64,000 nucleotides of DNA from Oculina patagonica (Eukaryota). Shown in pieces: positions 42,114 to 64,000 of this stretch (position 1 is its first letter; every line of letters begins with the position of its first letter). A program made the position numbers and the translations under genes. The notes below the pieces were generated by a model. The model had not been told where the DNA came from, searched no databases, and saw only the letters and a program-made list of their open reading frames with translations. Where the stretch lies: contig NC_135761.1 in the NCBI RefSeq assembly GCF_052425735.1, positions 9,734,001 through 9,798,000 of the forward strand, given 5' to 3'.

Positions 42114-42903
42114 GGGCGCTTTCCATTTGACCAAAAATTCTGGTTTGAGTTTCCGGAAAATTCCAGTGGCAAATGGAACAGTATTTTCCAACTTTTCCGG
42201 TTGACTGCACGGAAGGCAAAACAAAATTTGCATATGGTCAGGTAGTGCGTCTACTATGGAAATTTCTACGGTGCATTAAAATAATGCACTGTGGCCAGTT
42301 TCCTGCAAATATAACTCGATATTTTTGTAAATAAAAAGCATTCCGAGCACTGAATATAAACGCCATGAATGACATCGTGGTGACAAATACAGGGACCTTT
42401 CAAAAGGCACACTACAAGCAACGAAAACGTCCCCAACCCAAAATGTTTGATGAGCAAAACGTAGCCTGCACGCGCGTTATAAATATTTGTACATTTCAGT
42501 TTGCTGCCGCCTGCAAAGCAACAACGAAAAACAACCGAGTTCACCTACATTTTTTTTGGAGTTTCAAGAATGCTTCCTTAACACATGTAGCTGCTTTCAG
42601 CTGCACAAATCGCTAAATTTTCTGCCGAAGGAACTTAGGCTGAGTGTAAAATGGTAGCTTTTTCCAAAATTTTCTGAAAAGAGGACAACCTCGCAAGGTA
42701 GACCCAAATTTTCGAACACAATTTCCGGGAACTTTCAGTTCCATTTGATTTTGCTTCTGGAATTTCCGGGGGTTTCGGTTGAATGGTTCGCATTTCGGAA
42801 TGTCACCACTTTCCGGATTTTCTGGAAACTTTTCCAGGAAATTTCTGTACCATTTGTCCTTGTTCCGAAATTTCCGGAATTTTTGGTCGAATGGAAAGCG
42901 CCC
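42114..42903. mobile_element. Harbinger-type MITE (right arm only)
   Basis: ttt|gggcgctttccatt ... aatggaaagcgccc|ttt. Absent at the mirrored site ~39490. Confidence 0.8.
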
Positions 42904-42986
42904 TTTGTTTTTGATTCGTCACACAACGCCAAATCCGACTGCGTGCCAGCGTTGTGTAACTCAGCAATTTCCTTTTACCTCTACAG

Positions 42987-44927
42987 CACTCCTCGTTTGA
43001 CTTTGATCAAACATCAAACATATGGCTTCAGCCATTTTCTGCGTTGATTAACTGTATGTTTCCTGTGGAGTATATCTACGCAGATTGGCTTGGATGGCAA
43101 ACAAACAACCAAGCACAGCGGGCAGATCCAGAATGTCTCACAAGTCCATCGGATGCCACTAAAGAGTCTGGAAGTCGCGTTGAAGGATTCTGTATCCCTC
43201 AACTTGTACTCAGAAAAAGTGACATTGACCATGTCAACCCTCTTCAGGTCTTACAAGAACATTGGCAGCCTGATCGTGACACGATGACAGCAAATGATTC
43301 CTTTGTGGAAAATAATGAAAAGAAACTGATACCTATTTTTACTGCTGAACATGCCGAAGACGACCCAAGATACGCAAAGCTCAGACTGACCAAGGAGTGG
43401 AAAGATCATCGACCGCGTTACAAGAATGTTTCCTTTCTTCACCATTCGTTTCTGCTGCCTTCAGCAGAACATCCAATGAAAGGCCTTGAAGAAACGCGTT
43501 TCGACGGCCAAAAGAGCGCGTTGTCCTACGATCTGCACGGTCCTGTACGTAAACTTCAATCAGGCAGTTTTCCAAGTTACGAGGAAGATCAGACAGGCGT
43601 TTTCAAGTATCCAATCGCGTGGCCAGAGCCTGCTATGGAATGGTTGATCCGACAGCGTCCAAGTGGTTGGCCCTCACCTGAACTGGTACAGGAAATATTT
43701 GACGCTGGATGTCATTTGGCCCCTGTTGGGAGAGGAAAGCGCGCTGATGAGCCGGTAGAAACACTGTATTATTGCCAAAAGCCGGAACTGTCAGTAACCA
43801 GTTCCACAGTGCCATCTGCGAGTGGCAACGGAGGAAAAGATGCCATGGATGAAACGGAATGGAGGATATCCTTTTCCCTGGCCGAAAATAGACTTGGAGA
43901 GAGTGTCACTCCCGTGCAACGACACGTCATGGTTTTGTTAAAGATGATCAAGAAGTTTTACTTTCCCGATGTGATTTCAACGTATTATTTGAAGAATCTG
44001 TTGTTTTGGGAATGCGAGAAACAAGAAGAGGTCTTTTGGAAAGAAGAAAACTCCGCCAATTGCCTTTTGTTCCTGTTGGATCGTCTCCAAGAGTGTTTGA
44101 AGGCACATCATCTGCCACATTACATCATGCCCGAGAGTAACCTTTTACAGTATGAAGATCCTGCCAGTCTTAAGGAAGCTGCTGTGATTGTTGGTGAAGT
44201 AAGAAGTAACATTTTACCAAAGACAGTCAGCTTACTGAAAAGGCTTCAGTCAATGAGTTATCTGTCAAGCACATACCTTAAAGATATTGGTCTGCAGTTG
44301 GAAGGCGATCTCCTAAGAATGCAAGAACAAAACCACAAAGATCAAAAGGTACTCCTAAGATCTCTCCACTCACGTTTTGTGGGCAAGTGCAAGGATGTCA
44401 TAGCAAGTATACGAAGAATTCAGGAGAGCTCGACAGACATCGAAAGGGAGTTAAATGTAGCTTTAAATGCTTACCAATCGATGCTGGCAAGAAATCTGTG
44501 CAAATTGTGGCAGCTTGATGAATACCATGACGAGAGTGAGGACGAATTCAAGTCATTCGTAAAGAAAGAAGTCAAGGATCTTTCCTTTGATGATGCTTTT
44601 CTTGCACTGGCACTTGTCTTCCTCGACAGAGCGAAAAATGGAGCTGAGCCCTCGTTGGCAATTCCGACTACAAGAGTGATGAAGCTCCTGAGAGAGGAAC
44701 AGATGCAAATAGCCAAGGAGAACGTGGAAGAAGGAAAAGCACAATTTAAAGGAATTTTGGATTTGCTGAAGAGAAGCGACTTAAAGGATATTACAGAAAA
44801 ATTATCCAAAGAATTCCAAGGAAAGTTGGAAAGCACAGAGGCTATCATTACGCAAGAAGACATGGAGGGCTTATTTAATAGGGAAATTACAGCGATATTT
44901 CAAGAGCGAATGAAAGACAAACAATGA
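42987..44927 (+). CDS. cGLR D', main exon (inverted copy of D)
   Basis: Phase-0 acceptor ctctacag|CACTCC. About 16 aa differences from D by manual comparison; catalytic motifs intact. Confidence 0.93.
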   Translation, partial: HSSFDFDQTSNIWLQPFSALINCMFPVEYIYADWLGWQTNNQAQRADPECLTSPSDATKESGSRVEGFCIPQLVLRKSDIDHVNPLQVLQEHWQPDRDTMTANDSFVENNEKKLIPIFTAEHAEDDPRYAKLRLTKEWKDHRPRYKNVSFLHHSFLLPSAEHPMKGLEETRFDGQKSALSYDLHGPVRKLQSGSFPSYEEDQTGVFKYPIAWPEPAMEWLIRQRPSGWPSPELVQEIFDAGCHLAPVGRGKRADEPVETLYYCQKPELSVTSSTVPSASGNGGKDAMDETEWRISFSLAENRLGESVTPVQRHVMVLLKMIKKFYFPDVISTYYLKNLLFWECEKQEEVFWKEENSANCLLFLLDRLQECLKAHHLPHYIMPESNLLQYEDPASLKEAAVIVGEVRSNILPKTVSLLKRLQSMSYLSSTYLKDIGLQLEGDLLRMQEQNHKDQKVLLRSLHSRFVGKCKDVIASIRRIQESSTDIERELNVALNAYQSMLARNLCKLWQLDEYHDESEDEFKSFVKKEVKDLSFDDAFLALALVFLDRAKNGAEPSLAIPTTRVMKLLREEQMQIAKENVEEGKAQFKGILDLLKRSDLKDITEKLSKEFQGKLESTEAIITQEDMEGLFNREITAIFQERMKDKQ

Positions 44928-45798
44928 AACATTTTTGAAGACAGCTAAGTAAAAGAACAAGTAAGAACAGAAAAATAAGAACAATTTTGAAGAAAGGAAA
45001 AATTTAATAAATCCCGAGAGAATCAGTAGTGTCGAAAACACGACTAGGCAAAGGTATAAAATGGACTCGATGATCGCGTATTACGCTTAGTTTATAATCC
45101 TGTGAGGCAACTACCGTTGCGGTAACCGTTTCACGAAGCAAAAACATCTGAAAACACATCTGAATTCTGGTCCAGGGAAGCATTATTTGACCAATTAGGG
45201 CGCGCGGTGAACAATACGAGATTTCTTCAAACAAGCGGTCAAAACGTTCGCAAAGCTAGTACAAGGATGAAAGAAAGTCTTAAGCATAAATCAGTAATAG
45301 GTATGTTAGCTTTCCTGATGAAAAAAAGAATGAATGATTCATCAATTTTATTTGATATAAAGCCAACTTTTATGCGTGAACCAATTTAAAAGGATTGAGC
45401 TGCACCCGATTCAACGCTTGTTCCAGATTCGTTCCTTTTATTATTTGTAGTCAAACATTTTAACGTAGAAAGGTCCTAACAGGAACTGCAGCATACCGTA
45501 AAATTCCGGTTCTAGCCCCCCCCCCATTCGCTTATAATTACTGAAGCCTCCCTGGTCAGTATAGGCTCATCTACCTGGAAACAACAACAAAAAATATATC
45601 CGGTCATAATCCCCCCCCCCCCCCCCCACAGATATAAGCCCTTCACTGCTGGATAACAGCATTGAACAGGGCTAAACATAAATGCTTTTATTAAGACTTT
45701 GTCCCCCTCCGATATAAGCCCCTCCGTTTATAAGGCCACCCAAAACCCCTTACGAAGTTGTATAAGCCCAGGGCTTATAATCGGAATTTTACGGTATA

Positions 45799-46327
45799 CA
45801 GTCAACTCTCGCCTTGCGGACACCCCGCTATTGCGGACACTCGCTATTACGGACAAAATCCAGATCCCCGGCGAATAAGGTTCGACTGGAAATGACTCCC
45901 GCTATTACGGACTCTCGCTATAACGGACATTAAACGACGCCCCGAGCGTGTCCGCTATAACGAGAGTTGACTGTACAGTCAACTCTCGCCTTGCGGACAC
46001 CCCGCTATTGCGGACACTCGCTATTACGGACAAAATCCAGATCCCCGGCGAATAAGGTTCGACTGGAAATGACTCCCGCTATTACGGACTCTCGCTATAA
46101 CGGACATTAAACGACGCCCCGAGCGTGTCCGCTATAACGAGAGTTGACTGTACAGTCAACTCTCGCCTTGCGGACACCCCGCTATTGCGGACACTCGCTA
46201 TTACGGACAAAATCCAGATCCCCGGCGAATAAGGTTCGACTGGAAATGACTCCCGCTATTACGGACTCTCGCTATAACGGACATTAAACGACGCCCCGAG
46301 CGTGTCCGCTATAACGAGAGTTGACTG
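45799..46327. mobile_element. Three tandem copies of a 175-bp MITE separated by TA
   Basis: TA|cagtcaactctcg...cgagagttgactg|TA three times, period 177. Absent from the left arm (~36682). Confidence 0.9.
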
Positions 46328-48078
46328 TATTGCGATTATCATAGTTACATAATTTCCTTTCGGAACTACTCATTGATAGCTCTTTCTATGCGGTACTATG
46401 CATTATTTTGATGTTTCTTCTGAGTTAAAAACAATGTTTTGTACCATGATTGAAAATATCGATAAAGATAGCATACTTAAAGGATTAAAAGACCTGGAAA
46501 TGATCGAGGACGCGGTTAGATTAATTTATTTTGCTCTGTCTTCATCGAAAGACCTTTTTCAGTGGTTTCTTTGTGTTTAAAATGCGTCAGAGAATGGTTA
46601 TTAGGTCAACTGATAGTTCTTTAAATGAAAAATGCGTTTGGTTCTATAAATGTTGCCGGCACAAGCTCACTGGAAGCTTAGTAGATTTCAATTTCCCGTT
46701 GTTGATATAGCGGGGATAACAGCACGTGGACTATCTCTATCATCTTCTCTCCCCTTTCGGCTGTCCTGGCTGTCGCCCGTGTCAAAACTAAAATTTAACC
46801 GTGGCTAAATGCAGAAAACTGCAGCTTAAACCTACATGTTGAAAACTGAAATCTAAAACGTAACCCCTTCAAAGCCAAATTCGAAAAAAAAAAACAGCTA
46901 ACAATGTAACACTAAAAACTGAAAGGTAAACTCCTAAATTTCCGAAACTGAATGCCTTGATGTCGCTAACTGGAAGCTGAAACCTAGAATAAATAATTCT
47001 ACTCATCTCCACTACGTAGCCTTTGTCATCCTTTGCTCAATTTGTGAATTTAGAGCGAACGTTTAATTCCCGACATAAGCTTAAATTTACGCTGAGAAAA
47101 GCTGGAATGAGTCTTGGTTTTCAGACTCTTTTGCATGGGTGGCCTTAGTGGTTGCTAAAAATAATCTCTTGAGTAACGTTTTATATTTCCTTTTTTAGCT
47201 CCACGAAAAAAATTAAGGAGCTGAAGCAACTGCACGCTTGTGCTATTAGTAAGCTATTGCAGTATCATTATATCATTAAGACCGCAATAAAAGAGAGAAT
47301 TGCCTGCAAGGATCAGATCCACTTAAACGCGGAAACCTGCAGAAAGGGGTACCAAAGAATTTAAGCTTAGACAACAGTGAGCGTGAAGTCTCCATTGAAG
47401 TAAGATATAAGAATGTAATACATTAACAGCTTGGTAATCTAGTTCGCTTTATAAAAAGTTGCAAAAAGCATTCGCAAATAATATGTAGATCTGCTTTATT
47501 GCAAGTATTCGCCTGTTTATACTTCCCCTATATGCTACTAACACCTGTCATTCCCTTTTTAAAACATGGTTGAAGTTCTAAATTTCTTATTTAGTTTAAT
47601 CTTAAGTCTTGTATTCAGTTGTGATTAAGGGTACCGAATCTATTCAAGGTGTTCTGTCTGCGGGTTTGGCGGTGTTAGTTTCAGATAAGTATTAGTATGT
47701 ATAACAATTATAACACAGTTATAGACGTTATTTTATTTGCCCTTATTTGAAAATAGCTAAACTTGAAAACAGCAGCGTGTTTGCTTGGTTAGTTCAAATC
47801 TCCAATCATATGTCATCGAACCGAGCAAACGCGACTACTTTCTAGAGACCAATATTTCCAGATTGGCTTTCGCGTACACTTTTTGCCTTCGCTTCATTAA
47901 TACAACATCGATAGAGGAAAAGGGAGGAAAGAGAAGAATGTAATGTGTTTTCAACTTGATGACTGTTAATATTGAACCCATGGTCTTGTATAAGCGAGAA
48001 ACAATTCTTTTCACTGTTTATATTATAGGTGGTTTGTGTATTCTCGAGTATTACCTTACGGTTCAGGTGACCAAAGTA

Positions 48079-48397
48079 CTATTCACAACACTAATAATGA
48101 TATGCGAAGTTGAAATACACTTAATAATGGGTATTTCATGGCTTATTTAGCAGTCTCACGTGCAATTACGTAACTGCCAATGATAAATTCTGGTTTGGCG
48201 CGAAAATAATTCATTCTAGCTCAGTTTTCAGCGGAGCCACGAAGAGGTGAACGGCCCACCCTCCCACCCAAAAATCGCGTGGGTCGTATCTTGAACACCT
48301 CCTAAGCCAAGCTGTTCCAGCTTGGCTTAATCCGCTGATCAATCATTTTTCCCACACCTTATTACAACTGAGCATGAATATGAATGTTGCTGAATAG
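48079..48397. mobile_element. Small insertion with short TIRs (right arm only)
   Basis: ctattca ... tgaatag. Absent at the mirrored site ~33698. Confidence 0.6.
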
Positions 48398-48968
48398 AAT
48401 ACTTTTGTATGTTGAAGCTCACGGAACATTTGATTTATCTTAACAAAACTCGCGCAGGATTAAGGCGCACGGCTGGTTTAAATAGGGGTTTACATTTACT
48501 TTTGCGATGGTAATAACATGTGCCGTGCCGAAGGTGTACGTAGCTCTGTAAGTGGGTATGGGAAAATGCTCTTGCGGCTATTTTGAAAGTTGAGGTGCTT
48601 TAAATAACACAACCCGTTGAGGTTCTTCGTTCAAAACCGTTCAAGCCCACCCGGGATTAAAATCATGAGCTTAGACGATTAACAAGTGTAGCGAAAGGTT
48701 TCTGTTTAAATTCTCTCTGAAGTACTGCTTCTTTTCACTGTCACGAATGGCGGATCACAAAAAATTATGTGCCTTAATTTTTGAAGGTAGAAAATCCGTT
48801 TCAGTCTTCCTCTTATTCCCCTTTCTACGCCAGTTTCATTTACTAGTTGCACGTAACTATGTAAATCGAAAACAATAAACATCCTAGCTTACAATCCCTG
48901 ACAATTCTGATGCGAACAATATCACAACTTACTTTTACAGGCCTGAGATCTAATCACTTGCAGTCAAA

Positions 48969-48986
48969 ATGGTTGGGGCAGTATCG
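48969..48986 (+). CDS. Putative start micro-exon of cGLR C' (MVGAVS)
   Basis: Exon 48941-48986: ttttacag|...caaaATGGTTGGGGCAGTATCG|GTATGT, phase 0. Confidence 0.6.
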
Positions 48987-49514
48987 GTATGTAGTGTCTG
49001 CGGAAACCACAGTGTTTCTTTTTATGTTGATATTTTCCTTTGTACTTGTGTTTGTGTCTGATCCAGATAAAACTGAAAATCTGACTTTTAACTGTCTGAA
49101 TTGAACCTTAATTTAAATGTGTGTTTTTTGTGTAACTATTTAATTTTGAACAATGAGCATTAATTAGTTTTCGAATATAAAGCTAACTTGGGAACTGAAC
49201 TTTACCAACACTTTATTAAAAAGGGTTTGTATCCATAAATCTAAGGTAGCTCAGAATTGTGTAAAATTGAATTACATAAACAGTTACCCTGTAACTTCAT
49301 GACAAATGTGTTCAGAATTAGCTAGCGTTCTTATATAAGGTTTTGGAGTTTTTTTTTTCTTGATAGCTTTAGCTTTATTAGTTGGTTTTAGCTTTTTAAG
49401 TTGTAGAGTAACATTTTTCCAGTTAGATACAAGTAAGGCGCACGTGCTGGTTGGGAAGAAAAGTTCGTGTGACCCTCTGAGTGTAACGCAACCATATTGC
49501 CTTCTTTTCTACAG

Positions 49515-51476
49515 AATCGCCCGCAAGGCTTTGATGAAACGTCAAACATATGGGTTCAGCCGTTTTCTGCGCTGATCAACTGCATGTTTCCTGTAGAATA
49601 TGTGTACGCAGATTGGTTTGGGTGGCAAACATGGAACGAAGCACAGCGGGAAGATCAAGAATCTCTCGTCAGTCCATCGGAAGCAACCATAGTGGCTGGA
49701 AGTCGAGTTGAAGGATTTTGTATCCCTCAGTTTTTCCTTCGAAAAACTGATGTTGAACGCGGTAGTGTGGTTGATTTTCGTGGCAGTGTGCTTGAACATT
49801 GGCAGCCTGATCTTGATAGGATGGAAGCCAATGATTCTTTTGTTGAAAATAGTGAAAAGAAACTGATACCTATATTCACTGTTGAACATATCGAGGACGA
49901 CCCAAAGTATGCAAAGCTCAGGCTGACCAAAGAATGGAAAGATCATCGACCGCGTTACAAGAACGTTTCCTATCTGCACCATTCTTTTTTGCTGCCTTCA
50001 GCGGATGAATATCATTCCATGGCTGGCCTTGAATCAAATCAATTTGATGGCCAAAAGGGTTCGTGGTCATACGATCTCCACGGTCCTGTGCGTAAACTTG
50101 AGTCCGAAGGTTTTCCAAGTTACGAGGAAGATCAGACAGGCGTTTTCGAATATCCAATAGCGTGGCCAGAACCTGCCATGGAATGGTTGGTCCGACCGAG
50201 GCCAAGTGGTTGGCCCTCACCCGAACTTGTCCAGGAAATATTTGACGCTGGTTGTCATTTGGCCCCGGTTGGCAGAGGAAAGCGTATTGATGATCCCGTT
50301 GATTTGCTCAGTTATTGCCAAAATCCGGAGCTGTCAGGTGCTAGTTCCGCAGGTCTACAGGAGGAATGCAAAAAAGGAAAAATGACTATGGACAACACAG
50401 AATGGAAAACGTCCTTTTCAGTGGCCGAAAATAAACTTGGCGAGAGTGTGTCTCCAGTGCAACGACATGTCGTGGTTTTGTTGAAAATGATTAAGTCATG
50501 TTACTTTCCTAAGGTGATATCAACGTACTGCTTGAAGCACTTGCTCTTTTGGGAAAGCGAGAGGAGACAGGCGGTCTTTTGGAGAGAGGACAACTCCGCT
50601 AACTGCCTTCTGTTGATCTTGGATCGTCTCCAAGAGTGTTTGGAGGCACATCGGCTGCCGCATTTCTTCATTCCACGGAGCAACACTCTGGAATATGAAG
50701 ATCCGTCCAAAATGAATGAAGCCGCTGCCATTGTCGCTGAAGTTAGAAGAAATATTTTGCCGAAGACAGTGAATTTACTGAAACGGCTGCAGTCTCTGAC
50801 TTATCAGTCAAACTCATATCTTCAGGGTCTCGGTTTGCTGTTGGAGGACCATCTCCTAAAGATGCAAGACAGAAATATCTCAAATAAAGATCACAGACAG
50901 CTGCTATGCTCTCTCCACTCAGTCTTTGTTAGCAAGTGCAAAGACGTGATAACAGATTTACAAAGAATCTCGCCTGCGGAGCGCCAAAAGATAGAAAAGT
51001 TGGTAAACGTGTCTTTGTATGCTTACCAATCGACGCTTTCAAGAACTATGTGTAAATTATGGCTTCTCCATACTGATGAACGCAACGACCAGAGGAAGAG
51101 TGAAGACGAGTTCAAATTATTCGTGAAGGAGAAAGTTAGAGATCTTTCCTTTGATGAAGACTTCCTTGCATTGGCGCTCGTTTTCTTTGCCAGAGCTAGG
51201 AATGGCATGGAGCCCTCATTGGCAATTCCTTATACAAGAGTAATGAATCTTCTGAGAGAGGAACAGATGGGAATCGCCAAAGAGGGCATGGAAGAAGTAC
51301 ATAAGTTCTTGAAAGGAACTTTGTTCGATTCGCTAAAGAGGAGTGATCTCGAGAAGATCGAAGAGAAAGTTTCGAAGAAACTCCAAAATGAGGTAGACTT
51401 TATGACAGTTACAAATGAGGAAGTTTTGAGGTTTTTCAGTGAGGAGCTTGCAACGCTTTTTGAAGACAAGATGTAG
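49515..51476 (+). CDS. cGLR C', main exon (inverted copy of C)
   Basis: ttttctacag|AATCGC, phase 0; same NTase and Mab-21 motifs as C. N-terminus nearly identical to C, C-terminus diverged. Confidence 0.93.
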   Translation, partial: NRPQGFDETSNIWVQPFSALINCMFPVEYVYADWFGWQTWNEAQREDQESLVSPSEATIVAGSRVEGFCIPQFFLRKTDVERGSVVDFRGSVLEHWQPDLDRMEANDSFVENSEKKLIPIFTVEHIEDDPKYAKLRLTKEWKDHRPRYKNVSYLHHSFLLPSADEYHSMAGLESNQFDGQKGSWSYDLHGPVRKLESEGFPSYEEDQTGVFEYPIAWPEPAMEWLVRPRPSGWPSPELVQEIFDAGCHLAPVGRGKRIDDPVDLLSYCQNPELSGASSAGLQEECKKGKMTMDNTEWKTSFSVAENKLGESVSPVQRHVVVLLKMIKSCYFPKVISTYCLKHLLFWESERRQAVFWREDNSANCLLLILDRLQECLEAHRLPHFFIPRSNTLEYEDPSKMNEAAAIVAEVRRNILPKTVNLLKRLQSLTYQSNSYLQGLGLLLEDHLLKMQDRNISNKDHRQLLCSLHSVFVSKCKDVITDLQRISPAERQKIEKLVNVSLYAYQSTLSRTMCKLWLLHTDERNDQRKSEDEFKLFVKEKVRDLSFDEDFLALALVFFARARNGMEPSLAIPYTRVMNLLREEQMGIAKEGMEEVHKFLKGTLFDSLKRSDLEKIEEKVSKKLQNEVDFMTVTNEEVLRFFSEELATLFEDKM

Positions 51477-54055
51477 GAATAAAAAGGAAGAGTTTGTAAT
51501 GACAGTTAACTAACTGGAAAAACATCTCATTAACAAAAATGACTTACAAGCAAGTCGGAATTTATTAGAAAAGCTACCCAAAACGGAGGGGCTGAAAAGG
51601 CCAGGTTATAATCTAAGACCTATAAAGGTAACAAACATACAGGAGAACTTTTTTGAACGATGCCAAGGAACCGTTGAACCAGGACATTTATGTCGAAATT
51701 TTACTGGTATTCTTGTGCATAAACGTCTTTAAATTAGTTAGTGTGTAAGTAGATAATCAACTGCGGTGACATATCCCAGTCCACCCATTTATAGCTATCA
51801 AGCCAAACGTCCACTATTGAAGTAACCACTCCCTATGTTTTTTGTATACACAACATTAGTAAGAAATGTAAGAAAGTTTTATGGATTTTTGTATGGGACA
51901 AAAATTCTAATTCTCCGTTGAGAGTTGAGTCTACAACCTTCCACACTGCCCCGATACTCTAATCATTGGGTTATAGGAGATTTGTGACGAGCTAGGCCAT
52001 TTACTGGTTTTTAAATAAATGTGAAATACCTCCCTCGTGCTGATAGGAACAAGAATGTGAAAAGCTATGGTCGAGTATGGTAAAAAGCATGATGAATAAA
52101 TACAAAGTTTAAGCTCGTTCATTTTGTGGTTACTTGTTATCAGAGAATGAATTAACCCAGTGAAGACGCGGAGTGTAACCGAAAGCTAAAGCAAGTAACA
52201 AAGACATTAGCCAAAAAGAGATTTTTTTTCCGATCACCTTTCCTGGTGCTCCGAGGATGCGCTCATGCAATACCTCCGCTCGCTTGTTTTTACACATTTT
52301 GTGCAATTATTACACAGCCTTCTATACCGTGTTTTTCTGTAAATTGCGCAATGGTTCTACTGCTGTTAGAGTCATCTTTGAGCAAGCATATTTGATAATG
52401 GGTACAGTTTTGAAAGCATTCAAGGTCATAGACTACAGAGTAGACAATGTGATTGTAGATGACGCGGTTGTTGAAAAACGTGACTTGTACATCTTTTCTG
52501 CTTTTTGTTGCTTTATTGTTTATGATTTAGCTGTATAGTGTCTATACTGCGTTGCACTGATGTTTTATCGTCATGTGAATTCTATACATATTCCATATCA
52601 AAAATGACGTTAAAGGATGGCCCTATCGTGGTAAAATCGATTACTTCGCCATCCCACACTTCTGATTCTTTATTGTCGATAATAATTCGGACTCACAGGC
52701 AGTTAAAAATAGAACGTGTTATTGGATTGTATGTACCAATTGTTTTCGTGCTTAGGTTGTTAAAATTATGTGTTTCGGAAGGGATGATGACAGTCGAAAT
52801 TTGAAACTTTTAAGTTACTTAAAAGTTACATTTGGAACTACTGACCTGTGTGCAAACCCGTTTAGGTGAGAATACTGATACAGTGGAATACCGATTTCTC
52901 GAGCCTTCCATTTCCAGAAAAACTTCCTGACGATTCGAGCCAAAATTCCTTTGCTTTGGTTTTGCTTTACTGAATTTTACTTCCTATTTTTCAAGTCAAT
53001 TTTTGTTTCCCTATTTGGGAACTAATGGAGGACTGAGAGATCGGGATTCCACTGTCGTTTGCTTTTTTGATAACTTGTAAGATAATATTGTGAGTGCCTC
53101 AATGGTGTGGTGACTTTTACAGGGAATTCACGCGAAAATGTGGATTACGCCATCAAACAATGCTTTTGTTACTAGCTCTTTACCTTTGCTTTGAAAATAA
53201 CTGAAACATGTATATTTTATCTCCTTGGATGCTTGCGCACCCTTGTTGGCGGTCACTGAGATAAGAGTCAAACCACTTAAGGGCCTTATGATCAACTCCA
53301 AAGTTTGCTAACTTTTATAACATTATCTTGTGGTCTATTGTGTGGAAAGCGTTTTTAAATCCCTTGATTAAAAAATATGCGCATGTCCTGCTTAAGATCG
53401 TTCAACCTCGACCAGGACATGCACATTATATGATGCCATTAAATTATATTCCCATAAATAAATTCCATTTCCCAGCCTATTGTTTGCCCAAATTTTCCCA
53501 AATCCCAGTCCCAGTCCTTTTTTGTGTGTAATCCCAGCTACAGAGACCCAAATATCATTTTCCAAGGCCCCTTTCTACGGAAGATATTTTGAGTTAATTC
53601 ACTACCAGATCGAGATATGTTTTACATCAGTTCGGAACATTTATGACTCAGTTTCTTATTTACATGTTTTCCATTTTTATTTCTTTCATGCACGTGCTTG
53701 AGATAGAAGGTAATTTCGGTCCAGGCTCTACCTTTTTCTAGGAATTAGTTCATCTCGCATATTTAGCATCCCATTTTGACATTTCCATGTAAGAACTTGT
53801 CTCAAGGGTATCTAGAAACATTTTTCAAGATAGCTTTTCTGGCCTGAGCACAGATGAAACATCACTGAGGGACTATATCTGCGAAAAACAGACTGAGATA
53901 ACAAAGGAGCTTTCGAATAGCGTCATTTGATGTTTTTCATGCAGCAGTTGAATTCGACGATACTAAAATCACAAATAATCCCATTTCTGCCGAGATAGTT
54001 CTCGACGGCAGACTTGATTTGATTTTTAAAATTTATAGGCCCGCGGCAGTTACAG

Positions 54056-56456: not shown

Positions 56457-56621
56457 ATGGACCTGCTTTCTCAGAGAATTGAGTTGCAGGGGTTTGAGAA
56501 ATCTTATGACCCTGAAGGGGACGGTGACTGCTTCTACAAGGCAGCTGCTTTCCAGTTAGGAAGAGATGGAACTGAGTTGAAGAAGGAAATATTTGACTTT
56601 CTGGCCCAGAACCAATATGAT
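56457..56621 (+). CDS. OTU-module exon 1, gene A' (OTU-PUB)
   Basis: MDLLSQRIELQGFEKSYDPEGDGDCFYKAAAFQL...NQYD|GTAAGT. Confidence 0.87.
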
Positions 56622-56835
56622 GTAAGTAATCATTTGTTATCACTTCACTGACTGTACTGCACAAACATTTAACATTACTTAGCTTTAAAGTTTACAGTAT
56701 TACATCCATGCTTGGGCAAAAACAGTTTGACATATAAGAAGGGTGTGTGGCAATGAAAAAAATCTTTCTCATGTGTCTGTTTATATAATGGTCGCTCCTT
56801 TGTAAAGACAATTTTATCTCTATCTTACTGTACTG

Positions 56836-57718
56836 TAGCCTGAATTTCAGACATCCCTCTGTGCTCGCCTGCTTGCCAGAAGGAACGTCTGAACACATTT
56901 GAGCCTAATGCCGTCCGGTGACGTCACTACACTTTGGTTGTAATTCATGCGGAAAAGTTTCTGTCGAGGCCATGAAATTGTGAAAGAAAAATCGCTTCAA
57001 TAAAGGATTGCAGGGTATAAAATTGTTTTAATAGTAAACTATTGAAAACTTGAGACAAATGAATAAGATTTTAATCGCATGCAGGCTATATTCTTTTACG
57101 GAACCGATTTAATCTGAACTGAAGCTTATCTAGCGATCAAAATATAATATGTTACGCAGCGAGCAAATACAACACACTCGTGAGTACTTAAATGAATCAA
57201 TTTAGACGGTTACTGAGGCATCAAGAAACGGAATTCAATACAAAAATATCCTACTTGACTATGGGCACTGAGTTCAGAAATCACTGGCTCATCGAGGCTG
57301 CAGGACATAAGCGTCGAGCGGCTTTGTTGACAAAACAAGAATACATATATAAATTTGGCAAAACACTGCATGTCGAAGCGACGAATGCCGCCAACTTAAA
57401 ACCTACCGATTTCCATTACTATTCTTCATCCGTAGGTAAACTAATAAAGTAATAAACTCAAGGTAAATGACTAATAAATTCATTTCTGGGAAGGTAACTC
57501 CTTCGAACTCTTTCCAAACGTTTTCAAATTACAATCCTCGCGCGGTAAAATTCAGTCATAATTTCACATAATTATGCAAATAATTTTAAAATCAACCAAT
57601 CAAAATCACTACCCGGTTTTCGGGTAGTGACGTCACCGGACGGCATCAGGCTCAAATGTGTTCAGACGTTCCTTCTGGCAAGCAGGCGAGCACAGAGGGA
57701 TGTCTGATATTCAGGCTA
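56836..57718. mobile_element. Non-autonomous DNA transposon, ~95-bp TIR, 9-bp TSD (possibly Academ-type)
   Basis: actgtactg|tagcctgaatttcagacatcc ... ggatgtctgatattcaggcta|actgtactg. Confidence 0.85.
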
Positions 57719-58475
57719 ACTGTACTGTATTGCATGTTGTTTTGTCATTTTGGCATGCGAATGGGTTAATATAGGTCTACAGAATTAAACTGTTTTTACG
57801 GCTGTAGGACAATGTAATCAACAGTTTCAATTTTACTTGAAATAAATTGTGTAAGGTGTCTCGCTAATAAAGGGATATTATCAATCTAACCTGATACTTA
57901 TGACGCTCATGCTGTATATTTGCTCAATATTCTGAGTAATCTCAAATGTAAAACTACTGGCTCGTCTCTGGCCGTCTAGATTTATATTAATAGTATTAAT
58001 AATACCCACTGTATGTTTTAAATGGGTCAATATAAGTCTAGAGAATTAAATTGATTTTAATTTTTCGTTTTGTGTAAAATTACACGATTTAAATTATAAA
58101 GTGGGTGCGTACGAAAACGAAGCTGAAACCATTTATGATCTCACATTCTCAAACTCATTAATAATTCATCAGGTCAAAACAAAGAAAATCATAACCGTGA
58201 CGGTGGTTTGGATACCCGATCTTAATTAGCATAGATTTTTACGATTTTATTTCTCCGTTTACTCCGTAGTTTTTGCTTCGATTGAGAAGATATATCAAAC
58301 ACTCGAGACAGTGTTTAATTGGCTATCCAAACACTTCGAATTTCGTCAAAAATACTCCGCTGCGCGTCGTATCTTCAACTCTCTTCTCGGTGTTTGGATA
58401 TCCCGATGAAACACTGTCTCTCGTGTTTGATATATTACTTTACAAGACTACGAAAACATACAATTTTTGTTTTAG

Positions 58476-58652
58476 TTCCAGGAACAGAACAGGCTCGACT
58501 TTGTTTGTAGTGGCGATATTCAAAATCAAGATGTTCCCTCCGACTGGTGTGAAGCTCTCACTTTGTTACGCAAAAGCTGGGCAAACGAGATGGTCATCAG
58601 AGCATTGTCTGAAAGCTTGCACTGCAAAATAACAATAATTACAGCTTCTGGG
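58476..58652 (+). CDS. OTU-module exon 2, gene A'
   Basis: gttttag| FQEQNRLDFVCSGDIQNQDVPSDWCEALTLLRKSWANEMVIRALSESLHCKITIITASG |GTAAG; 177 nt. Confidence 0.87.
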
Positions 58653-58739
58653 GTAAGCTGTTTTCACGTTTCCTAAATGTAATATAGAAATGATTCCTAG
58701 CACTATCTTTAGCTCTGGCACTGGTCCCACAAGTGCCAC

Positions 58740-60490
58740 TATCACTTCTGTCACTTCTACACCACCACTGTCACTTCCTACATTGACGTCCACTTCCATT
58801 ACCATAGTTCCTCTTACTCTATCCACAAGCTACCCATTACCCACTACCTATTACTCACTACCACTACCCAGTAGCACTACTACTACCAACTACCCACTAC
58901 CACTGCAACTACCACTACACTAATACAACCACTACCACTACTACGACTACCACTACACACTTCCCCTAATCACTACCACTGACACTACCCACTGCCACTA
59001 CCACTAATCACTTACCACTACCACTACCACTACCACTACCACTGCCACTACCCTCTACCACAGCCACTGCCACTGCCACTGCCACTGCCACTACCCTCTA
59101 CCACTGCCACTGCCACTACCACTGCCACTACCCTCTACCACTGCCACTGCCACTGCCACTACCACTACCACCGCCACTGCCACTGCCACTGCCACTACCA
59201 CTGCCACTACCCTCTACCACTGCCACTGCCACTGCCACTGTCACTGCCACTGTCACTGCCACTGCCACTGCCACTGCCACCGCAACTGCCACTGTCACTG
59301 CCACTGCCACTGCCACTGCCACTGTCACTGTCACTGCCACTGCCACTGCCACTGCCACTGCCACTGTCACTGTCACTGCCACTGNNNNNNNNNNNNNNNN
59401 NNNNNNNNNNNNNNNNNNNNNNNNNNNNNNNNNNNNNNNNNNNNNNNNNNNNNNNNNNNNNNNNNNNNNNNNNNNNNNNNNNNNNNNNNNNNNNNNNNNN
59501 NNNNNNNNNNNNNNNNNNNNNNNNNNNNNNNNNNNNNNNNNNNNNNNNNNNNNNNNNNNNNNNNNNNNNNNNNNNNNNNNNNNNNNNNNNNNNNNNNNNN
59601 NNNNNNNNNNNNNNNNNNNNNNNNNNNNNNNNNNNNNNNNNNNNNNNNNNNNNNNNNNNNNNNNNNNNNNNNNNNNNNNNNNNNNNNNNNNNNNNNNNNN
59701 NNNNNNNNNNNNNNNNNNNNNNNNNNNNNNNNNNNNNNNNNNNNNNNNNNNNNNNNNNNNNNNNNNNNNNNNNNNNNNNNNNNNNNNNNNNNNNNNNNNN
59801 NNNNNNNNNNNNNNNNNNNNNNNNNNNNNNNNNNNNNNNNNNNNNNNNNNNNNNNNNNNNNNNNNNNNNNNNNNNNNNNNNNNNNNNNNNNNNNNNNNNN
59901 NNNNNNNNNNNNNNNNNNNNNNNNNNNNNNNNTCACCGCCACTGCCACTGCAATAGCCACTGCCACTGCCACTGTCACTGCCACTACCACTGCCACTACC
60001 CACAACTACTTCCACCTTCATTGCCACTGCTATTGCCACTGCCACTCCACTACCCACTTCTCACTGCCACTGCCACTACCGCTGGCACTGGCACTGGCAC
60101 TGCCACTACCCACTACCCACTTCCCACTACCACTAATCACTGCCACTGTCACTGCTACTTCCACTACACACTTCCACTTATTATTACCACTCCAACTACC
60201 CACTGCCACTGCCCACTACCCACTACTCACTACCATTACCACTGCCACTGCCACTACACACTACTCACTACCATTACCACTGCCACTGCCACTACACACT
60301 TCCACTAAATCGCTACCACTGCAGCTATCCACTGCCACTGCCCACTTCTACTAAACACTACCTCTGCCACTTCCACTACCCACTGCATCCTTCCCAATAC
60401 CACTGGCACTATCCACTACCACTACCACTTCACAATGCCACTAACCATTACCACTGCCACTACCCACTCTTACAACCTACTATCTATTAC
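58740..60490. repeat. (CCACTG/CCACTA)n low-complexity microsatellite, including N gap ~59385-59931
   Basis: Direct reading of the hexamer repeat; lies in OTU intron 2. Confidence 0.95.
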
Positions 60491-60498
60491 CAACTTCG

Positions 60499-60885
60499 AT
60501 AACATAACATAACATAACATGAACTTTATTTAAACTTGAATTTTAGAGTAGCCTAAAAAGGCTAATATCTTAGAGAACATAAATTGTATACAATTGAAAT
60601 TTACATTCAAAATCTATTTACATCTATTTACATGAAAAAAATGTTAAGATATACCATTATGCCTGAAAGGAGATTACTTTTAGGAGTCTTCTAAAACCAG
60701 TTAAAGTAGGCTCAGATCTTACATTATTAGGTAAGGAGTTCCAGGTCTTAGATGCCAAATAATGAAAAGAGTTGAGGCCATAAGTAGTTGTAACAACAGG
60801 TTTACATAGTGATAAAATATTAGTTCCTCTTAAAGAGTATTCAGACTGACGCAAAGTAAGCATGTCTTTAAGATACTTAGGAAAA
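60499..60885 (-). mobile_element. 3' fragment of a CR1/L2-group LINE
   Basis: PKYLKDML...YSLRG...TTTYGLNSFHYLASKTWNSLP...FRRLLK is a typical RT C-terminal tail; (ataac)n tail at 60499-60520. Confidence 0.8.
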
Positions 60886-61252
60886 CTGTCACCACTACCC
60901 ACTACTATTGCCACTACCAATAGCCATGCCATTTCCACATTTCTTGACTCGCTGACACAAAATGGAAAGGAAGTCCTCTTAACCACTCAAACATTTGAGG
61001 AGCCTTAAGCATTTACCTCTCCCCAGTAGCTTATATTGTTGCGTTGGTCCAAGTCTTCTTGATCGTAACTACTTGTCTTGTAAACAAACACTAATATCGC
61101 TGTGTGTGACTGAACCCTTTTGAGTGAGCTTGCATGACGCTTGTGTGATCATAATTGTTTTATGACATGACCTGCCTTTTTTCATTCGAAATTTTCGCGC
61201 AAGAATCTCAGATATTTTATAACCCACTATATCGAAACTTTTCTATTGACAG

Positions 61253-61372
61253 GATACACCCGATTCGTATGTTAAAGTTATTGTCCCTGCTCAGCAACGT
61301 GGGACTCCGCCCCATGTGCTTTATTTCGGTCACACTGGAAATCACTACTTTGCTCTCAAGGAAAAGATTTCA
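61253..61372 (+). CDS. OTU-module exon 3, gene A'
   Basis: ttgacag| DTPDSYVKVIVPAQQRGTPPHVLYFGHTGNHYFALKEKIS |GTAAGT; 120 nt, phase 0. Confidence 0.87.
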
Positions 61373-62514
61373 GTAAGTATTTCGTGACAAACGCCGCCAC
61401 ACGTAAACCGACAGAGTAAGTTAACGAGACAAATTCACAGAAGTAAATTTTTGTCTCGTAAAAGAATAAACCCATAACATTTAAAACTTTTTGTCACTAG
61501 TGTGCTCTTTTGCTCCCTATGATGCTAGTTCAATAAAGTTAATTAAAGCCCTATTCTTATATAACTTTTGTAATGATTTTTAAACGCAATGTAGTCATTA
61601 CGACGCATTTTGGATTTTGTAGGCTGAAATCATCTTATCAATATTTCAATTACATATGAATCTGTAGCCACAAAACTTTAAAAGGAACGTGTCTGATAAC
61701 ATTGGGATGTCTGCTAACATTTTGGTTGTCGTTAGCAGCATACAACAATGGCATCATAAGACACCATATGTACTTAAATATCGGCCACTTAAAATTTCTC
61801 TAGATTTATTTAGTTCATTTATAGCCAAGCAAAACCAAGTAAGTGGAATGAATGAAAGTTCCTTATGAATAATAAGTTTCATCATAGAAGGATATAGACC
61901 ACTAGAAAAAGTTCAAAGAGAAATGATCCTGTTACAAGATCAATCTGCCACCTTGGACTTTTAAGTTCACATCAAGTTCCTCAAGTTAGCGTTAAAGGGC
62001 CTAGTCAGCCTCTGCCATTTTCGATGCCATCGAAATTATGAAAACTGCACAGCGAAGCAAAAGCTTATTGCATTGCTGTAAGCTGTGTTACTGGAAGTCT
62101 GTTTAATTAAATTTAGCAGTTGCACAGTGATCTATTTTGTTTAGACACGCTCTGCGCAAAAATATAATACCGAAATTCCCGTATGTAAACAAAAACAAAG
62201 GCGTGGCTGACAAGGGTCCTTTAAATAACCTGAACTAATAAACAATGGTTTTAGAAATACAAACACAATTATAAAGCATAGAAATTATACAATTTTAAAA
62301 AATAGCTATCAAACCAGGTCGCCATGGAACGTCAAAATTGGTGAGCATGCGATACAACATGAACAATTTCCAGACATCAGCAGCCCCCTTTTCCCTTCTA
62401 AATAGAGTAATCCATCAAGGGTGGAGTAGTATGAAGCACAGTTTGTTTTGTTGAAATGAATACTTTCTTTTATTAATTTTGAAGATACAAATTAACACGA
62501 ATTCTTTTTACCAG

Positions 62515-62609
62515 CGTTGTAATGGAGACTCCTTGATTTCCTGTTGTTCATTGATGTACTTGAACGAAGATAAGGACAAGGTGAAGGCATGTGTCGACAC
62601 ACTTTGTAG
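62515..62609 (+). CDS. PUB-domain exon 1 (UBXN6-like), gene A'
   Basis: tttttaccag| RCNGDSLISCCSLMYLNEDKDKVKACVDTLC(R) |GTAAG; phase 0 in, phase 2 out. Confidence 0.8.
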
Positions 62610-62729
62610 GTAAGCACTGATAATATATTCAACATATCCAGTTCTGCAAGAAACTAACTTCTAACGGGCGCATTAGGTAGCCGTCTCACAACAGTTCTCT
62701 CATCTCTGAAAAAAAAAATTCTAAGATCA

Positions 62730-62990
62730 TTTTCCTTCAGTTTTCACAGCCTTCAGCGACTAGGAGTATTCCTTGCTTGTCCATCACAAAGTTACCCCCA
62801 CTCATAGTTGTAGAGGGGACCCCTTTACTAACTATGCCCCAGCATTAAATTTGCCGGTACCCATTTATACACCTGGGGTAGAGGGAGGCACTGTGAGTGT
62901 CAAGTGTCTTGCCGAACAACGCAACGGAAAGACCCCCTTCTGAGTTCGAATCCGGACCTCTAGATCAAGAGTCCAGCGGGCTATCGCGCT
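62730..62990 (-). mobile_element. tRNA-derived SINE fragment
   Basis: ccggtacccatttatacacctggg...aagtgtcttgcc...ttcgaatcc core, resembling invertebrate SINE2 families; B-box-like sequence on the minus strand. Confidence 0.65.
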
Positions 62991-63047
62991 TCCTATAAAT
63001 TAACATATTTTGGAAAATTAAAATATTCGATTGCTCCGTCTTCCTAG

Positions 63048-63123
63048 ATACCTTGACAACATCCGCAAGGATCCTGAAGAGGAAAAGTATCAAAAAATAA
63101 AACAAAGCAATAAAATCTTTCAG
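63048..63123 (+). CDS. PUB-domain exon 2, gene A'
   Basis: ttcctag| (R)YLDNIRKDPEEEKYQKIKQSNKIFQ |GTAAG matches the PUB signature YL.NI...P.EEKY.KI...NK.FQ. Confidence 0.88.
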
Positions 63124-63858
63124 GTAAGATGTCGAGATTATTATCGATTTACAGCAGCCCCTCTCAAACCATCAAGTAAAGAGAAAATATGGGAAAAAAT
63201 TTCTAACACGCCGCTTTATTCCTCTCACTTAACAACCTATTCATTTGCATTTTCCATGTCTAGGTCAGTGATCCGTTGTGGGGGGGGGGGGGGGGCGGGG
63301 TGTTGGTGGGGGTGGGGAAGGTGTGTTTACTAAACAAAATCAGATAAGCCCAGGTAAAGCACGTAAAACTCTTGAAATAAAATATTGAATAAAAAAGTAA
63401 AAGAAAAAAATAAGTCTTAGAAATACTGTACGTGCTTCCGAGTTGAAAGTTATCTCGAGCGTTAGTGCACAGGAGAAGCCATTGTTTACACAGCAAAGTG
63501 AAAAAAGAACAACAGCAGCAACTACAACAATACCAACAACAGCGACAACTGTAAGTTTTCTTTTCATTAATTATTATCAAGCACTAGACTAGCACGACTT
63601 AAGGTCTAGCCCATTGATCAAAGATCTTTAATAAACCCATTAATTGCGCAGTTCATTACGGGAATTTAGCCTTGATGTATTGTGGGCTGCCTCATTTGAA
63701 CTTGTTATGTGATGAATCACCTCTAAATAAAACCTTTTAGGCTCGATTACCAGTCTCTGTTTGGGAAAGACCTTAATTTGTCATGCGCGAATTGTGGTGT
63801 ATCAACTGCATTCTATGTCAGTTTGTTTTTGCTGACTTTTTCTTGTTTGTTCTTTTAG

Positions 63859-63937
63859 GAGCGTGTGGCGCCCGTCAAAGGAGCAACTGAATTTCTTCTC
63901 GCCTGTGGTTTTAAATACAAAGGTTTTCCAGATGAAG
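63859..63937 (+). CDS. PUB-domain exon 3, gene A'; gene continues off the right edge
   Basis: cttttag| ERVAPVKGATEFLLACGFKYKGFPDE |GT contains the PUB G..EFL...GF motif. Confidence 0.82.
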
Positions 63938-64000
63938 GTACAATTACGAAATGTTTAAATATTGTTCCATGTCAAGTGGCAGATTATAAACTCCACAACT

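Follow-up and report, generated by a model that had tools for sequence, protein, structure and literature searches.

We analysed a 64,000-nt stretch of Oculina patagonica DNA (hereafter, the window), at the end of which lie six exons of a predicted gene that runs beyond the last base. The six are bordered by AG acceptors and GT donors, with exon 1 opening at an ATG, and their lengths of 165, 177, 120, 95, 76 and 79 nt add up to a single open frame of 237 codons. Its translation is the peptide quoted in the original prediction, and the six in-phase exons described there were recovered at their coordinates. That prediction had left the gene open-ended, with a cGLR exon as a possible ending, and the downstream DNA (G000:C4) bears this out, as exon 7, read from there, completes the PUB domain and exon 8 supplies a cGLR module. 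All eight exons have AG/GT borders and mutually compatible phases. The joined frame comprises 1026 codons and one terminal stop, with all 3081 nt intact and 14 of 14 splice dinucleotides canonical. The predicted protein of 1026 aa has the order OTU-PUB-cGLR, the OTU module occupying residues 1-154, the PUB module residues 155-279, and the cGLR module with its helical tail of ~330 aa residues 280-1026. Coordinates of the exons and of neighbouring features are collected in Table 1.

Table 1. Exons of the OTU-PUB-cGLR gene and associated features. Positions are those of the window unless another sequence is named.
Feature	Position	Strand	Description
Exon 1	56457..56621	+	OTU start, 55 codons; D-G-D-C motif (Cys25); GTAAGT donor, phase 0
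Exon 2	58476..58652	+	Mid-OTU, 59 codons; AG/GT, phase 0-0
Hexamer satellite (CCACTG/CCACTA)n	58834..60468		Intron 2; Tandem Repeats Finder arrays on both sides of the gap
First exon of model KAL9974898.1	60862..60972	+	37 codons, spliced to exon 3 in P0001
Exon 3	61253..61372	+	OTU end, G-H-T-G-N-H-Y His motif; AG/GT; ends in phase 0
Exon 4	62515..62609	+	First exon of the UBXN6-derived PUB cassette; AG/GT; phase 0 to 2
Exon 5	63048..63123	+	PUB core, KYQKIKQSN motif; Pfam PUB 35.2 bits alone
Exon 6	63859..63937	+	More PUB (Pfam PUB profile positions 39-59); ends in phase 1
Intron 6 start	63938..64000	+	Gene continues beyond the window end
Exon 7	L004:3978-4102 (= window 64977-65101)	+	PUB completed; AG/GT; phase 1 to 0
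Exon 8	L004:5974-8217 (= window 66973-69216)	+	~2.2 kb; Mab-21/cGLR, helical tail and stop codon; CCCATAG acceptor, phase 0
Copy C, OTU-cGLR sister gene (RefSeq LOC144649475)	13342-7222	-	Oculina paralogue

The exon-intron structure was compared with existing gene models and with related copies. In the deposited model P0001 (KAL9974898.1), exon 3 is spliced to the PUB exons through the junction 61372->62515, and these in turn to the cGLR exon, whereas OTU exons 1 and 2 are missing. Within its first exon, the sequence from 60912 on is homologous to an intron in paralogue B and in locus L014 (ENA ERZ25067872), and this exon most likely represents part of intron 2 annotated in error. In the protein collection no RefSeq protein was found for the window copy, which is represented by the submitter's model only. 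For paralogue B, one RefSeq isoform contains the equivalent of the junction 61372->62515, linking OTU exon 3 with PUB exon 4, and the RefSeq entry for sister copy C (P0247, 922 aa) contains a full OTU joined to the cGLR in one protein. Exon 1 is 85% and 80% identical to paralogue exons at window positions 2525-2361 and 13342-13178, respectively; exon 2 forms one aligned block with transposable element (TE)-borne and paralogue OTU domains; exon 3 is present in P0001, in paralogues B and C and in loci L014, L017, L036 and L037; and exon 6 shares its GTAC donor with B, L014 and L017. Such comparative evidence supports the predicted splicing of the eight-exon gene, in which, as originally proposed, the OTU exons and a UBXN6-type PUB are colinear and in phase.

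An assembly gap (59385-59932) falls in intron 2, within the CCACTG/CCACTA satellite. The sequences flanking it (58466-58723 and 60912-61400) align in a colinear manner with the corresponding intron of paralogue B, L014 and L017. As there is satellite on both sides of the gap and the flanks are colinear, the gap leaves the coding sequence uninterrupted, and the exons on either side of it have the expected order, strand and phase. The homologous flanks are only ~110 nt apart in L014, indicating that the satellite is an insertion specific to the window copy.

The OTU exons of the window copy score 14-16 bits each against Pfam OTU (PF02338), with 14.3 for exon 2, below the cut-off of 23.3; the paralogue B protein P0095, which is 83% identical over 154 aa, reaches 32.2 bits against the same cut-off and covers profile positions 2-128. 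An AlphaFold2 model of P0095 residues 1-154, and thus of paralogue B rather than of the window copy, had a pLDDT of 89.6, and its top PDB matches were OTUD3, OTUD5, OTUD1 and tick-virus/nairovirus OTUs (probability 1.00). With OTUD3, OTUD5/DUBA, OTUD1 and the CCHFV and tick-virus OTUs, the coral module shares a minimal fold of ~150 aa (TM 0.62-0.74), the D-G-x-C Cys loop and the H-Y His motif. It differs from them in that identity is only 16-24%, a Phe replaces Asp/Asn at His+2, and the coral domain is encoded by three exons as part of a fusion with further modules. The predicted catalytic Cys lies in D22-G-D-C25 (exon 1) and the predicted catalytic His in G-H-T-G-N-H-Y (exon 3), both motifs aligning with those of TE-borne OTUs and a nairovirus OTU. 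Because the residue two positions past the His is Phe, and neither Asp nor Asn, the third triad residue is not assignable by sequence. We infer that the module is a minimal OTU-family cysteine deubiquitinase. Outside the cluster, its nearest relatives in the same genome are OTU domains within very long transposon-type open frames.

The PUB domain had been described as UBXN6-like, and running Pfam PUB (PF09409) gave 91.4 bits for residues 97-180 of P0001 (cut-off 34.3; profile positions 1-80 of 82), with exon 5 passing the same cut-off by itself. Its closest relatives are ~440-aa UBXN6-type PUB+UBX proteins (49-55% identity). Of the 22 PUB columns that are at least 80% conserved among 46 UBXN6-type proteins, 21 are identical in the coral PUB, including N190, K199 and N207. 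A separate true UBXN6 locus was sought and is present, complete, on another contig (G000:C2:39910858-39916685). The four PUB exons (4-7) have splice positions identical to those of this gene, and they form a symmetric cassette of 375 nt (phase 0-0) within the phase-0 OTU-cGLR intron. We also looked for an ordinary UBXN6 gene at the PUB exons themselves: no UBXN6 N-terminal or UBX exon was found from window position 51500 to 20 kb downstream, where only UBXN6-type residues ~164-298 match. Relative to UBXN6/UBXD1, a p97 adaptor with VIM, PUB and UBX, the PUB type, conserved columns and exon borders are the same, but the coral fusion has the four PUB exons alone, without the VIM-type N-terminus, the lariat or the UBX exon. 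Since only these four exons were copied and the full UBXN6 lies on a different contig, the fusion gene is not a UBXN6 orthologue, and this assignment was rejected. The Oculina p97 C-terminus is DDDLYS, a hydrophobic-Tyr-X tail, and in the human complex the UBXD1 PUB binds the p97 C-terminal tail (PMC10716044); conservation suggests that the coral PUB may dock on p97 as well. Taken together, the observation made in the original prediction is confirmed and its interpretation as an OTU-PUB fusion is partly supported. OTU and PUB do lie in one gene, but they are not the whole protein: because the gene continues into the cGLR exon, the order is OTU-PUB-cGLR, with the PUB in the middle.

Exon 8 scores 76.5 bits against Pfam Mab-21_C (cut-off 24.1) and 22.1 bits against the Mab-21 nucleotidyltransferase half, just below the cut-off of 24.1; sister copy C reaches 37.4 bits. 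A Foldseek search with the predicted structure of the cGLR module (pLDDT 81.3, pTM 0.85) returned MAB21L1 as the top match, together with Sp-cGLR1, cGAS and MB21D2 (E 5e-12 to 1e-9). The module has the Mab-21 fold in common with Stylophora pistillata Sp-cGLR1 (PDB 8GJY; Foldseek E about 6e-12), and HMMER gave 5.8e-18 for the single sequence and 2.1e-33 for the profile. The G-S, DxD and third-Asp motifs are likewise shared with cGLRs and cGAS, to which the coral gene adds the N-terminal OTU and PUB and the helical C-terminal tail. Across 53 homologues, drawn from corals, anemones and molluscs, the corresponding residues (G61-S62, D93-x-D95 and D198) hardly vary. The predicted structure places G61-S62 after strand 1 and D93-L-D95 where strand 2 begins, both sites being assigned by motif and predicted secondary structure rather than by residue-level structural alignment. 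A 30-residue insertion separates them, with residues 77-81 modelled at low confidence. D198 aligns with Sp-cGLR1 and with the Asp in the cGAS stretch S-V-D-I-T-L, which we take to be human D319. The gene belongs to a large coral cGLR expansion and lies among clustered Mab-21 exons, seven in all, of which five fall completely inside the window; the cluster begins shortly before the window and finishes shortly beyond it. In a cGLR survey, Sp-cGLR1 is an active enzyme and cGLRs occur fused to TPR, ankyrin and death domains and as tandem cGLRs, and neither the survey text nor the examined part of its domain table mentions OTU or PUB (PMC9980059).

Related loci were found in the same genome and in other assemblies. 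L014, which comes from an assembly of another organism, matches the window gene exon for exon, all eight being present with unchanged order and phases, AG/GT borders and an intact frame of 1052 codons. PUB exons 6-7 lie directly upstream of the cGLR exon in L013 and L015 (GCA_044670265.1), L036 and L037 (ERZ25067556) carry OTU exons and the cGLR without PUB, and exon 4 was not detected in L017. Paralogue B is arranged like the window copy, yet its exon 4 carries a 2-bp deletion and its cGLR exon at least two frameshifts, which break the gene and indicate that copies of OTU-PUB-cGLR can decay. Order, strand and phases from OTU to cGLR are kept at seven loci in three assemblies, namely the window copy (A), C, L014, L017, L036, L037 and the broken B. 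Against L014, dN/dS was 0.18 for the OTU, 0.36 for the PUB, 0.40 for the cGLR core and 0.53 for the tail, all below 1, at a dS of about 0.45-0.5. In the phylogenetic tree, the OTU-linked cGLRs form one clade (support 100/100), within which the PUB-bearing copies are a subclade (100/99). Copy C resembles the window gene in its three OTU exons (75-84% identical) and in its single large cGLR exon (54% identical), which is likewise entered through a phase-0 junction, whereas the PUB cassette is absent. These comparisons show that an older OTU-cGLR gene, whose three OTU exons were joined across a phase-0 intron to a single large cGLR exon, gained a DNA-level copy of four internal UBXN6 exons.

We consider it probable that the six exons open a gene of eight exons, in which an OTU deubiquitinase, a UBXN6/UBXD1-type PUB and a cGLR nucleotidyltransferase are joined. 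It is unlikely that they instead belong to two transcription units, a stand-alone small OTU gene (exons 1-3) and a separate PUB-cGLR gene, joined only by prediction. Such an arrangement would fit isoform X1 of paralogue B in RefSeq (P0244), in which an unrelated 3' exon follows OTU exon 3. It would also fit the more distant OTU copies, likewise of three exons, at other places in the genome, where no cGLR exon lies within about 8 kb, and the start of the deposited model of the window copy after exon 2. However, the phase-0 end of exon 3 fits exon 4 exactly, as it does the cGLR exon in PUB-less copies. The OTU-to-cGLR layout conserved across the seven loci, the intact frame of L014, the single clade of OTU-linked cGLRs and the RefSeq model of copy C as one OTU-cGLR protein likewise argue for one gene. 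The frame and splice sites of the window copy are intact, the predicted catalytic and binding residues are all retained, and the dN/dS values of 0.18-0.53 indicate constraint along at least part of the path to L014. It is improbable that the window copy is a young pseudogene, a duplicate that is decaying or not expressed and whose frame is open for lack of time, even though its neighbour B is broken in three places, L017 has no detectable exon 4, the window copy has no RefSeq protein in the collection and a satellite of about 2.2 kb with an assembly gap has grown within intron 2.

A doubtful but somewhat more plausible reading keeps the single gene and treats the Mab-21 module as a non-enzymatic, ligand- or partner-binding scaffold, a role that has been proposed for MAB21L1, with the deubiquitinase as the effector. 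If this were true, the protein would be a ligand-targeted deubiquitinase and p97 adaptor and not a second-messenger synthase. MAB21L1 is the top fold match, and we know of no report of nucleotidyltransferase activity for it; the sub-threshold Pfam score of the nucleotidyltransferase half and the insertion between G-S and DxD, with its low-confidence residues, point in the same direction. Against a scaffold stand the near-invariance of G-S, DxD and the third Asp across the 53 homologues and the alignment of that Asp with the catalytic Asp stretch of cGAS and with Sp-cGLR1, an active enzyme (PMC9980059).

The combination of OTU, PUB and cGLR occurs in none of the literature searched. Its pairings are known from mammals, where an OTU deubiquitinase works with the UBXD1 PUB and p97 in the YOD1-UBXD1-PLAA-p97 lysophagy complex (PMC10716044) and the OTU deubiquitinase OTUD3 stabilises and activates cGAS (PMC10566363). 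In those systems the partners are separate proteins that associate non-covalently, whereas the coral gene encodes the same pairings as a covalent fusion in one predicted chain. Bacterial CBASS with Cap2/Cap3 genetically links a cGAS-family nucleotidyltransferase to ubiquitin-type conjugation and deconjugation enzymes, Cap3 being a JAB-type protease with its own separate gene. The coral protease is OTU-type and fused, and the likeness lies in a nucleotidyltransferase linked to ubiquitin-type enzymes. Under the OTU-PUB-cGLR model that we favour, the cGLR module would sense a ligand and synthesise a nucleotide second messenger, the OTU module would free the receptor, or its signalling partners, of ubiquitin or of a ubiquitin-like modifier, and the PUB module would dock on the p97/VCP unfoldase by binding the Leu-Tyr-Ser tail at its C-terminus. 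OTU and PUB together may thus act as the sensor's built-in editing and extraction unit, stabilising or resetting the cGLR.

The six OTU and PUB exons of the window gene (copy A in the 529-Mb genome, G000, of the stony coral Oculina patagonica; window at C4:9734001-9798000) are all flanked by AG and GT splice sites at the coordinates originally predicted, and splicing them gives a single 237-codon open frame that matches the predicted peptide exactly. The gene had been left open-ended, with a cGLR exon as a possible end, and the downstream DNA indeed supplied two further exons, the second of which encodes a Mab-21 protein and lies ~1.9 kb beyond the first. Under the predicted splicing, the eight exons form a 1026-codon frame with one stop, at its end. 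Exon 8 scored 76.5 bits for Mab-21_C (Pfam) and 22.1 bits for the nucleotidyltransferase half, slightly below the cut-off of 24.1. Intron 4 also holds a ~145-nt repeat, possibly a SINE, with at least 35 copies at ~80-90% identity on many Oculina contigs. A lone OTU exon 1 fragment with an in-frame stop, probably a remnant of another copy, lies ~10 kb past the stop codon of the window gene.

Locations of the OTU-PUB-cGLR gene, its paralogues and associated sequence features (positions are those of the window unless a locus or contig is named; exons 7 and 8 on L004 and the fragment on L007 lie downstream of the window)
Feature	Location	Details
Copy A exon 1 (OTU)	56457-56621 (+)	165 nt; opens with ATG
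Copy A exon 2 (OTU)	58476-58652 (+)	177 nt
Copy A exon 3 (OTU)	61253-61372 (+)	120 nt
Copy A exon 4 (PUB)	62515-62609 (+)	95 nt
Copy A exon 5 (PUB)	63048-63123 (+)	76 nt
Copy A exon 6 (PUB)	63859-63937 (+)	79 nt
Copy A exon 7 (PUB)	L004:3978-4102	AG/GT borders; phase 1 to 0; completes PUB domain
Copy A exon 8 (Mab-21)	L004:5974-8217	2244 nt; phase 0; acceptor CCCATAG
Assembly gap, intron 2	59385-59932	
CCACTG/CCACTA hexamer satellite	58834 up to gap; 59934-60468	borders gap
Colinear intron-2 flanks	58466-58723; 60912-61400	
First exon of KAL9974898.1	60862-60972	37 codons
Intron-4 repeat	62837-62983	
OTU exon 1 fragment	L007:4457-4519 (G000:C4:9809456-9809518, +)	
Paralogue B, OTU exons	2525-541 (-)	
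Paralogue B, extension	G000:C4:9723700-9730900	
Copy C	13342-7222 (-)	
Inverted repeat arms	30391-40021; 41574-51650	
Second assembly gap	40857-41356	
Distant three-exon OTU copies	C4:10257k; C9:10846k; C4:37585k; C2:26922k	
Intronless OTU examples	C1:40575203-40575565; C2:33694482-33694841; C10:13657355-13657714	
UBXN6 locus	C2:39910858-39916685	
PUB-like exon	G000:C11:20827878-20828099	
RVT_1 open frame	L036:7507-9111	assembly ERZ25067556

The possibility that the assembly gap in intron 2 breaks the gene was ruled out by the satellite on both of its sides and by the intron-2 flanks, which are colinear with the same intron of paralogue B and of two loci from one other assembly. In L014, a locus of ENA assembly ERZ25067872, the homologous flanks are just ~110 nt apart. 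This colinearity and spacing place the gap within a copy-specific satellite expansion that leaves the coding sequence untouched; the junction of exons 2 and 3 is in phase 0.

The proposed junction 61372->62515 was found to be present already in a deposited protein, KAL9974898.1 (949 aa), which links exon 3 through the four PUB exons to the Mab-21 exon. For paralogue B, RefSeq LOC144649483 isoform X2 (P0095) joins PUB exon 4 to OTU exons 1-3, while for copy C, RefSeq LOC144649475 (P0247, 922 aa) joins the Mab-21 exon directly to the full OTU. No RefSeq protein for copy A was seen in the protein collection. The first exon of KAL9974898.1 starts just past the gap, is partly satellite sequence and, from position 60912 onward, is homologous to the intron of the other copies. 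The model bears no OTU annotation and lacks OTU exons 1 and 2, and with them the first 114 residues of the domain, probably owing to the satellite and gap that interrupt intron 2; domain surveys using that annotation will therefore miss the OTU. Two Logan contigs (L011 and L012), together with P0242 and P0243, were rejected as spliced transcripts, the contigs being genomic and the latter two single-exon read-throughs.

The predicted PUB domain was recovered by Pfam: exon 5 by itself passed the cut-off of 34.3 bits with 35.2, exon 6 extends the same profile and the whole domain reached 91.4 bits. In an exhaustive HMMER search, the best relatives of exon 3 plus PUB were ~440-aa proteins with the PUB at residues ~160-280, which carry Pfam PUB and UBX domains, the layout of UBXN6/UBXD1. 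An ordinary UBXN6 gene could supply such exons, but the true UBXN6 locus, with N-terminal, PUB and UBX exons, is a separate one on C2, and no UBXN6 N-terminal or UBX exon was found from window position 51500 to 20 kb downstream, which rules out that alternative for the PUB exons of copy A. In alignment, the splice positions of these four exons are identical to those of four UBXN6 exons. The four total 375 nt, making the cassette phase 0-0, and it occupies the phase-0 intron that links OTU exon 3 to the Mab-21 exon in PUB-less copies. The PUB cassette is the product of DNA-level exon shuffling of four UBXN6 exons, and the locus provides a clean case of a symmetric phase 0-0 cassette placed into a phase-0 intron. 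The intron that took up the PUB cassette in one lineage carries, in the PUB-less locus L036 (assembly ERZ25067556), an open frame for a reverse transcriptase (RVT_1), downstream of OTU exon 3 and ahead of the cGLR exon. A further PUB-like exon on C11, 34% identical to the UBXN6-type PUB, may be part of NGLY1 or another PUB protein.

All three modules retain intact motifs. The window OTU has the catalytic motifs D22-G-D-C25 and G-H-T-G-N-H-Y. Its exons taken singly gave weak Pfam matches; the Pfam OTU profile was passed by the paralogue protein P0095, which is 83% identical to the window OTU, a pass that belongs to P0095 and not to copy A. An AlphaFold2 model, again of P0095 and not of copy A (pLDDT 89.6), best matched OTUD3, OTUD5, OTUD1 and tick-virus/nairovirus OTUs, and viral-type OTUs were also indicated, weakly, by sequence and language-model searches of the OTU module. 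The window PUB keeps 21 of the 22 columns conserved among 46 UBXN6-type domains. Oculina p97 ends in DDDLYS, a tail of the hydrophobic-Tyr-X type that serves as a PUB-domain ligand (PMC10716044). Complex prediction with the window PUB and the C-terminal 33 residues of Oculina p97 scored 0.27 against a mark of 0.34, and is evidence neither way. The model of the cGLR module (pLDDT 81.3) best matched MAB21L1, the active coral enzyme Sp-cGLR1 (8GJY), cGAS and MB21D2. Nearly invariant among 53 homologues are G61-S62 and D93-x-D95, assigned on the basis of motif and predicted secondary structure, and D198, which a profile search aligned with the matching Asp of Sp-cGLR1 and with the Asp of cGAS S-V-D-I-T-L, which we take to be human D319. 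For the ~330-aa helical tail, a feature search returned nothing above 0.8 except other Mab-21 proteins, and no informative relative.

Two related copies are present. Paralogue B lies inverted at the window start, with its PUB and Mab-21 exons upstream of the window, and has the same eight-exon OTU-PUB-cGLR layout as copy A. A 2-bp deletion in exon 4, which puts a TAG at the end of that exon, and at least two frameshifts in the Mab-21 exon break paralogue B; RefSeq divides it into LOC144649483 and LOC144651387. Copy C contains OTU and Mab-21 without PUB. Four further Mab-21-only exons in the window are arranged as two mirrored pairs. Around the second assembly gap lies a ~10-kb inverted repeat whose arms, 94-99% identical, each hold two Mab-21-only genes; either a genuine palindromic duplication or a folded-in haplotype could account for it. 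Another four OTU copies, more distant and likewise with three exons, showed no cGLR exon in the sequence covered, up to ~9 kb past their OTU exons, and may be stand-alone OTU genes. OTU domains that lack introns and share 27-35% identity with the window OTU are also numerous in the genome; they lie within open frames of 2300-2500 codons that look like transposon (Helitron/Helentron-type) proteins.

Three other assemblies hold all or part of the gene. In ERZ25067872, L014 has all eight exons in the same order and phases, all with AG/GT borders, with 3 nt more in exon 4 and an intact 1052-codon frame, and L017 has this layout with exon 4 not found. In GCA_044670265.1 (L013 and L015), PUB exons 6-7 lie immediately upstream of the Mab-21 exon, on short contigs that limit the view to these exons. 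In ERZ25067556 (L036 and L037), the Mab-21 exon is downstream of OTU exons 1-3, with no PUB. In a maximum-likelihood tree built from the Mab-21 parts, every OTU-linked gene fell into one clade (100/100), distinct from the Mab-21-only genes found in the window and in Montipora, Actinostola and Nematostella. Loci with a PUB form one subclade (100/99) that includes copy C and is poorly resolved internally; copy C may have lost the PUB cassette. For the window gene against L014, possibly a pair of paralogues, pairwise dN/dS (Nei-Gojobori) stayed below 1 throughout: 0.18 for the OTU module, 0.36 for PUB, 0.40 for the Mab-21 core and 0.53 for the helical tail. Among 522-1660-aa proteins, OTU exon 3 plus PUB had no homologue beyond the deposited protein itself, and among 102-324-aa proteins the homologues of the full OTU were Oculina proteins and two fragments, nothing more.

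Among the pattern-recognition receptors of animals, cGLRs form a major family, one that is greatly expanded in corals. The fusions in a survey of the family include TPR, ankyrin, death-domain and tandem-cGLR proteins, and neither OTU nor PUB appears in its text or in the examined portion of its domain table (PMC9980059). No relevant paper emerged from full-text literature searches pairing cGLR or Mab-21 with OTU or PUB. The three-module gene is a cGLR with an undescribed accessory domain pair, OTU and PUB. In mammals, partnerships of such modules involve separate proteins: cGAS is deubiquitinated and activated by OTUD3 (PMC10566363), and UBXD1 acts in lysophagy together with p97 and YOD1, an OTU enzyme (PMC10716044). 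On the model of these OTUD3-cGAS and UBXD1-p97-YOD1 partnerships, we infer that the window protein would be a cGLR sensor that carries its own unit for ubiquitin editing and p97 recruitment. A bolder reading, which we consider unlikely, treats the fusion as a Rosetta stone for a conserved regulatory circuit: animal cGLRs would be switched through covalent attachment of ubiquitin or a ubiquitin-like modifier and through p97-driven extraction, with the coral receptor itself carrying the OTU eraser and the PUB dock. If so, the coral fusion would be a natural one-chain version of what OTUD3-cGAS and YOD1-UBXD1-p97 achieve as separate partners, and the circuit would mirror, in animals, the control of bacterial CD-NTases by Cap2/Cap3. 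That a cGLR has been joined to a deubiquitinase and a predicted p97 dock, in a fusion that is conserved and under selection, leads to the testable prediction of a direct action of ubiquitin editing and p97 on cGLR sensors.
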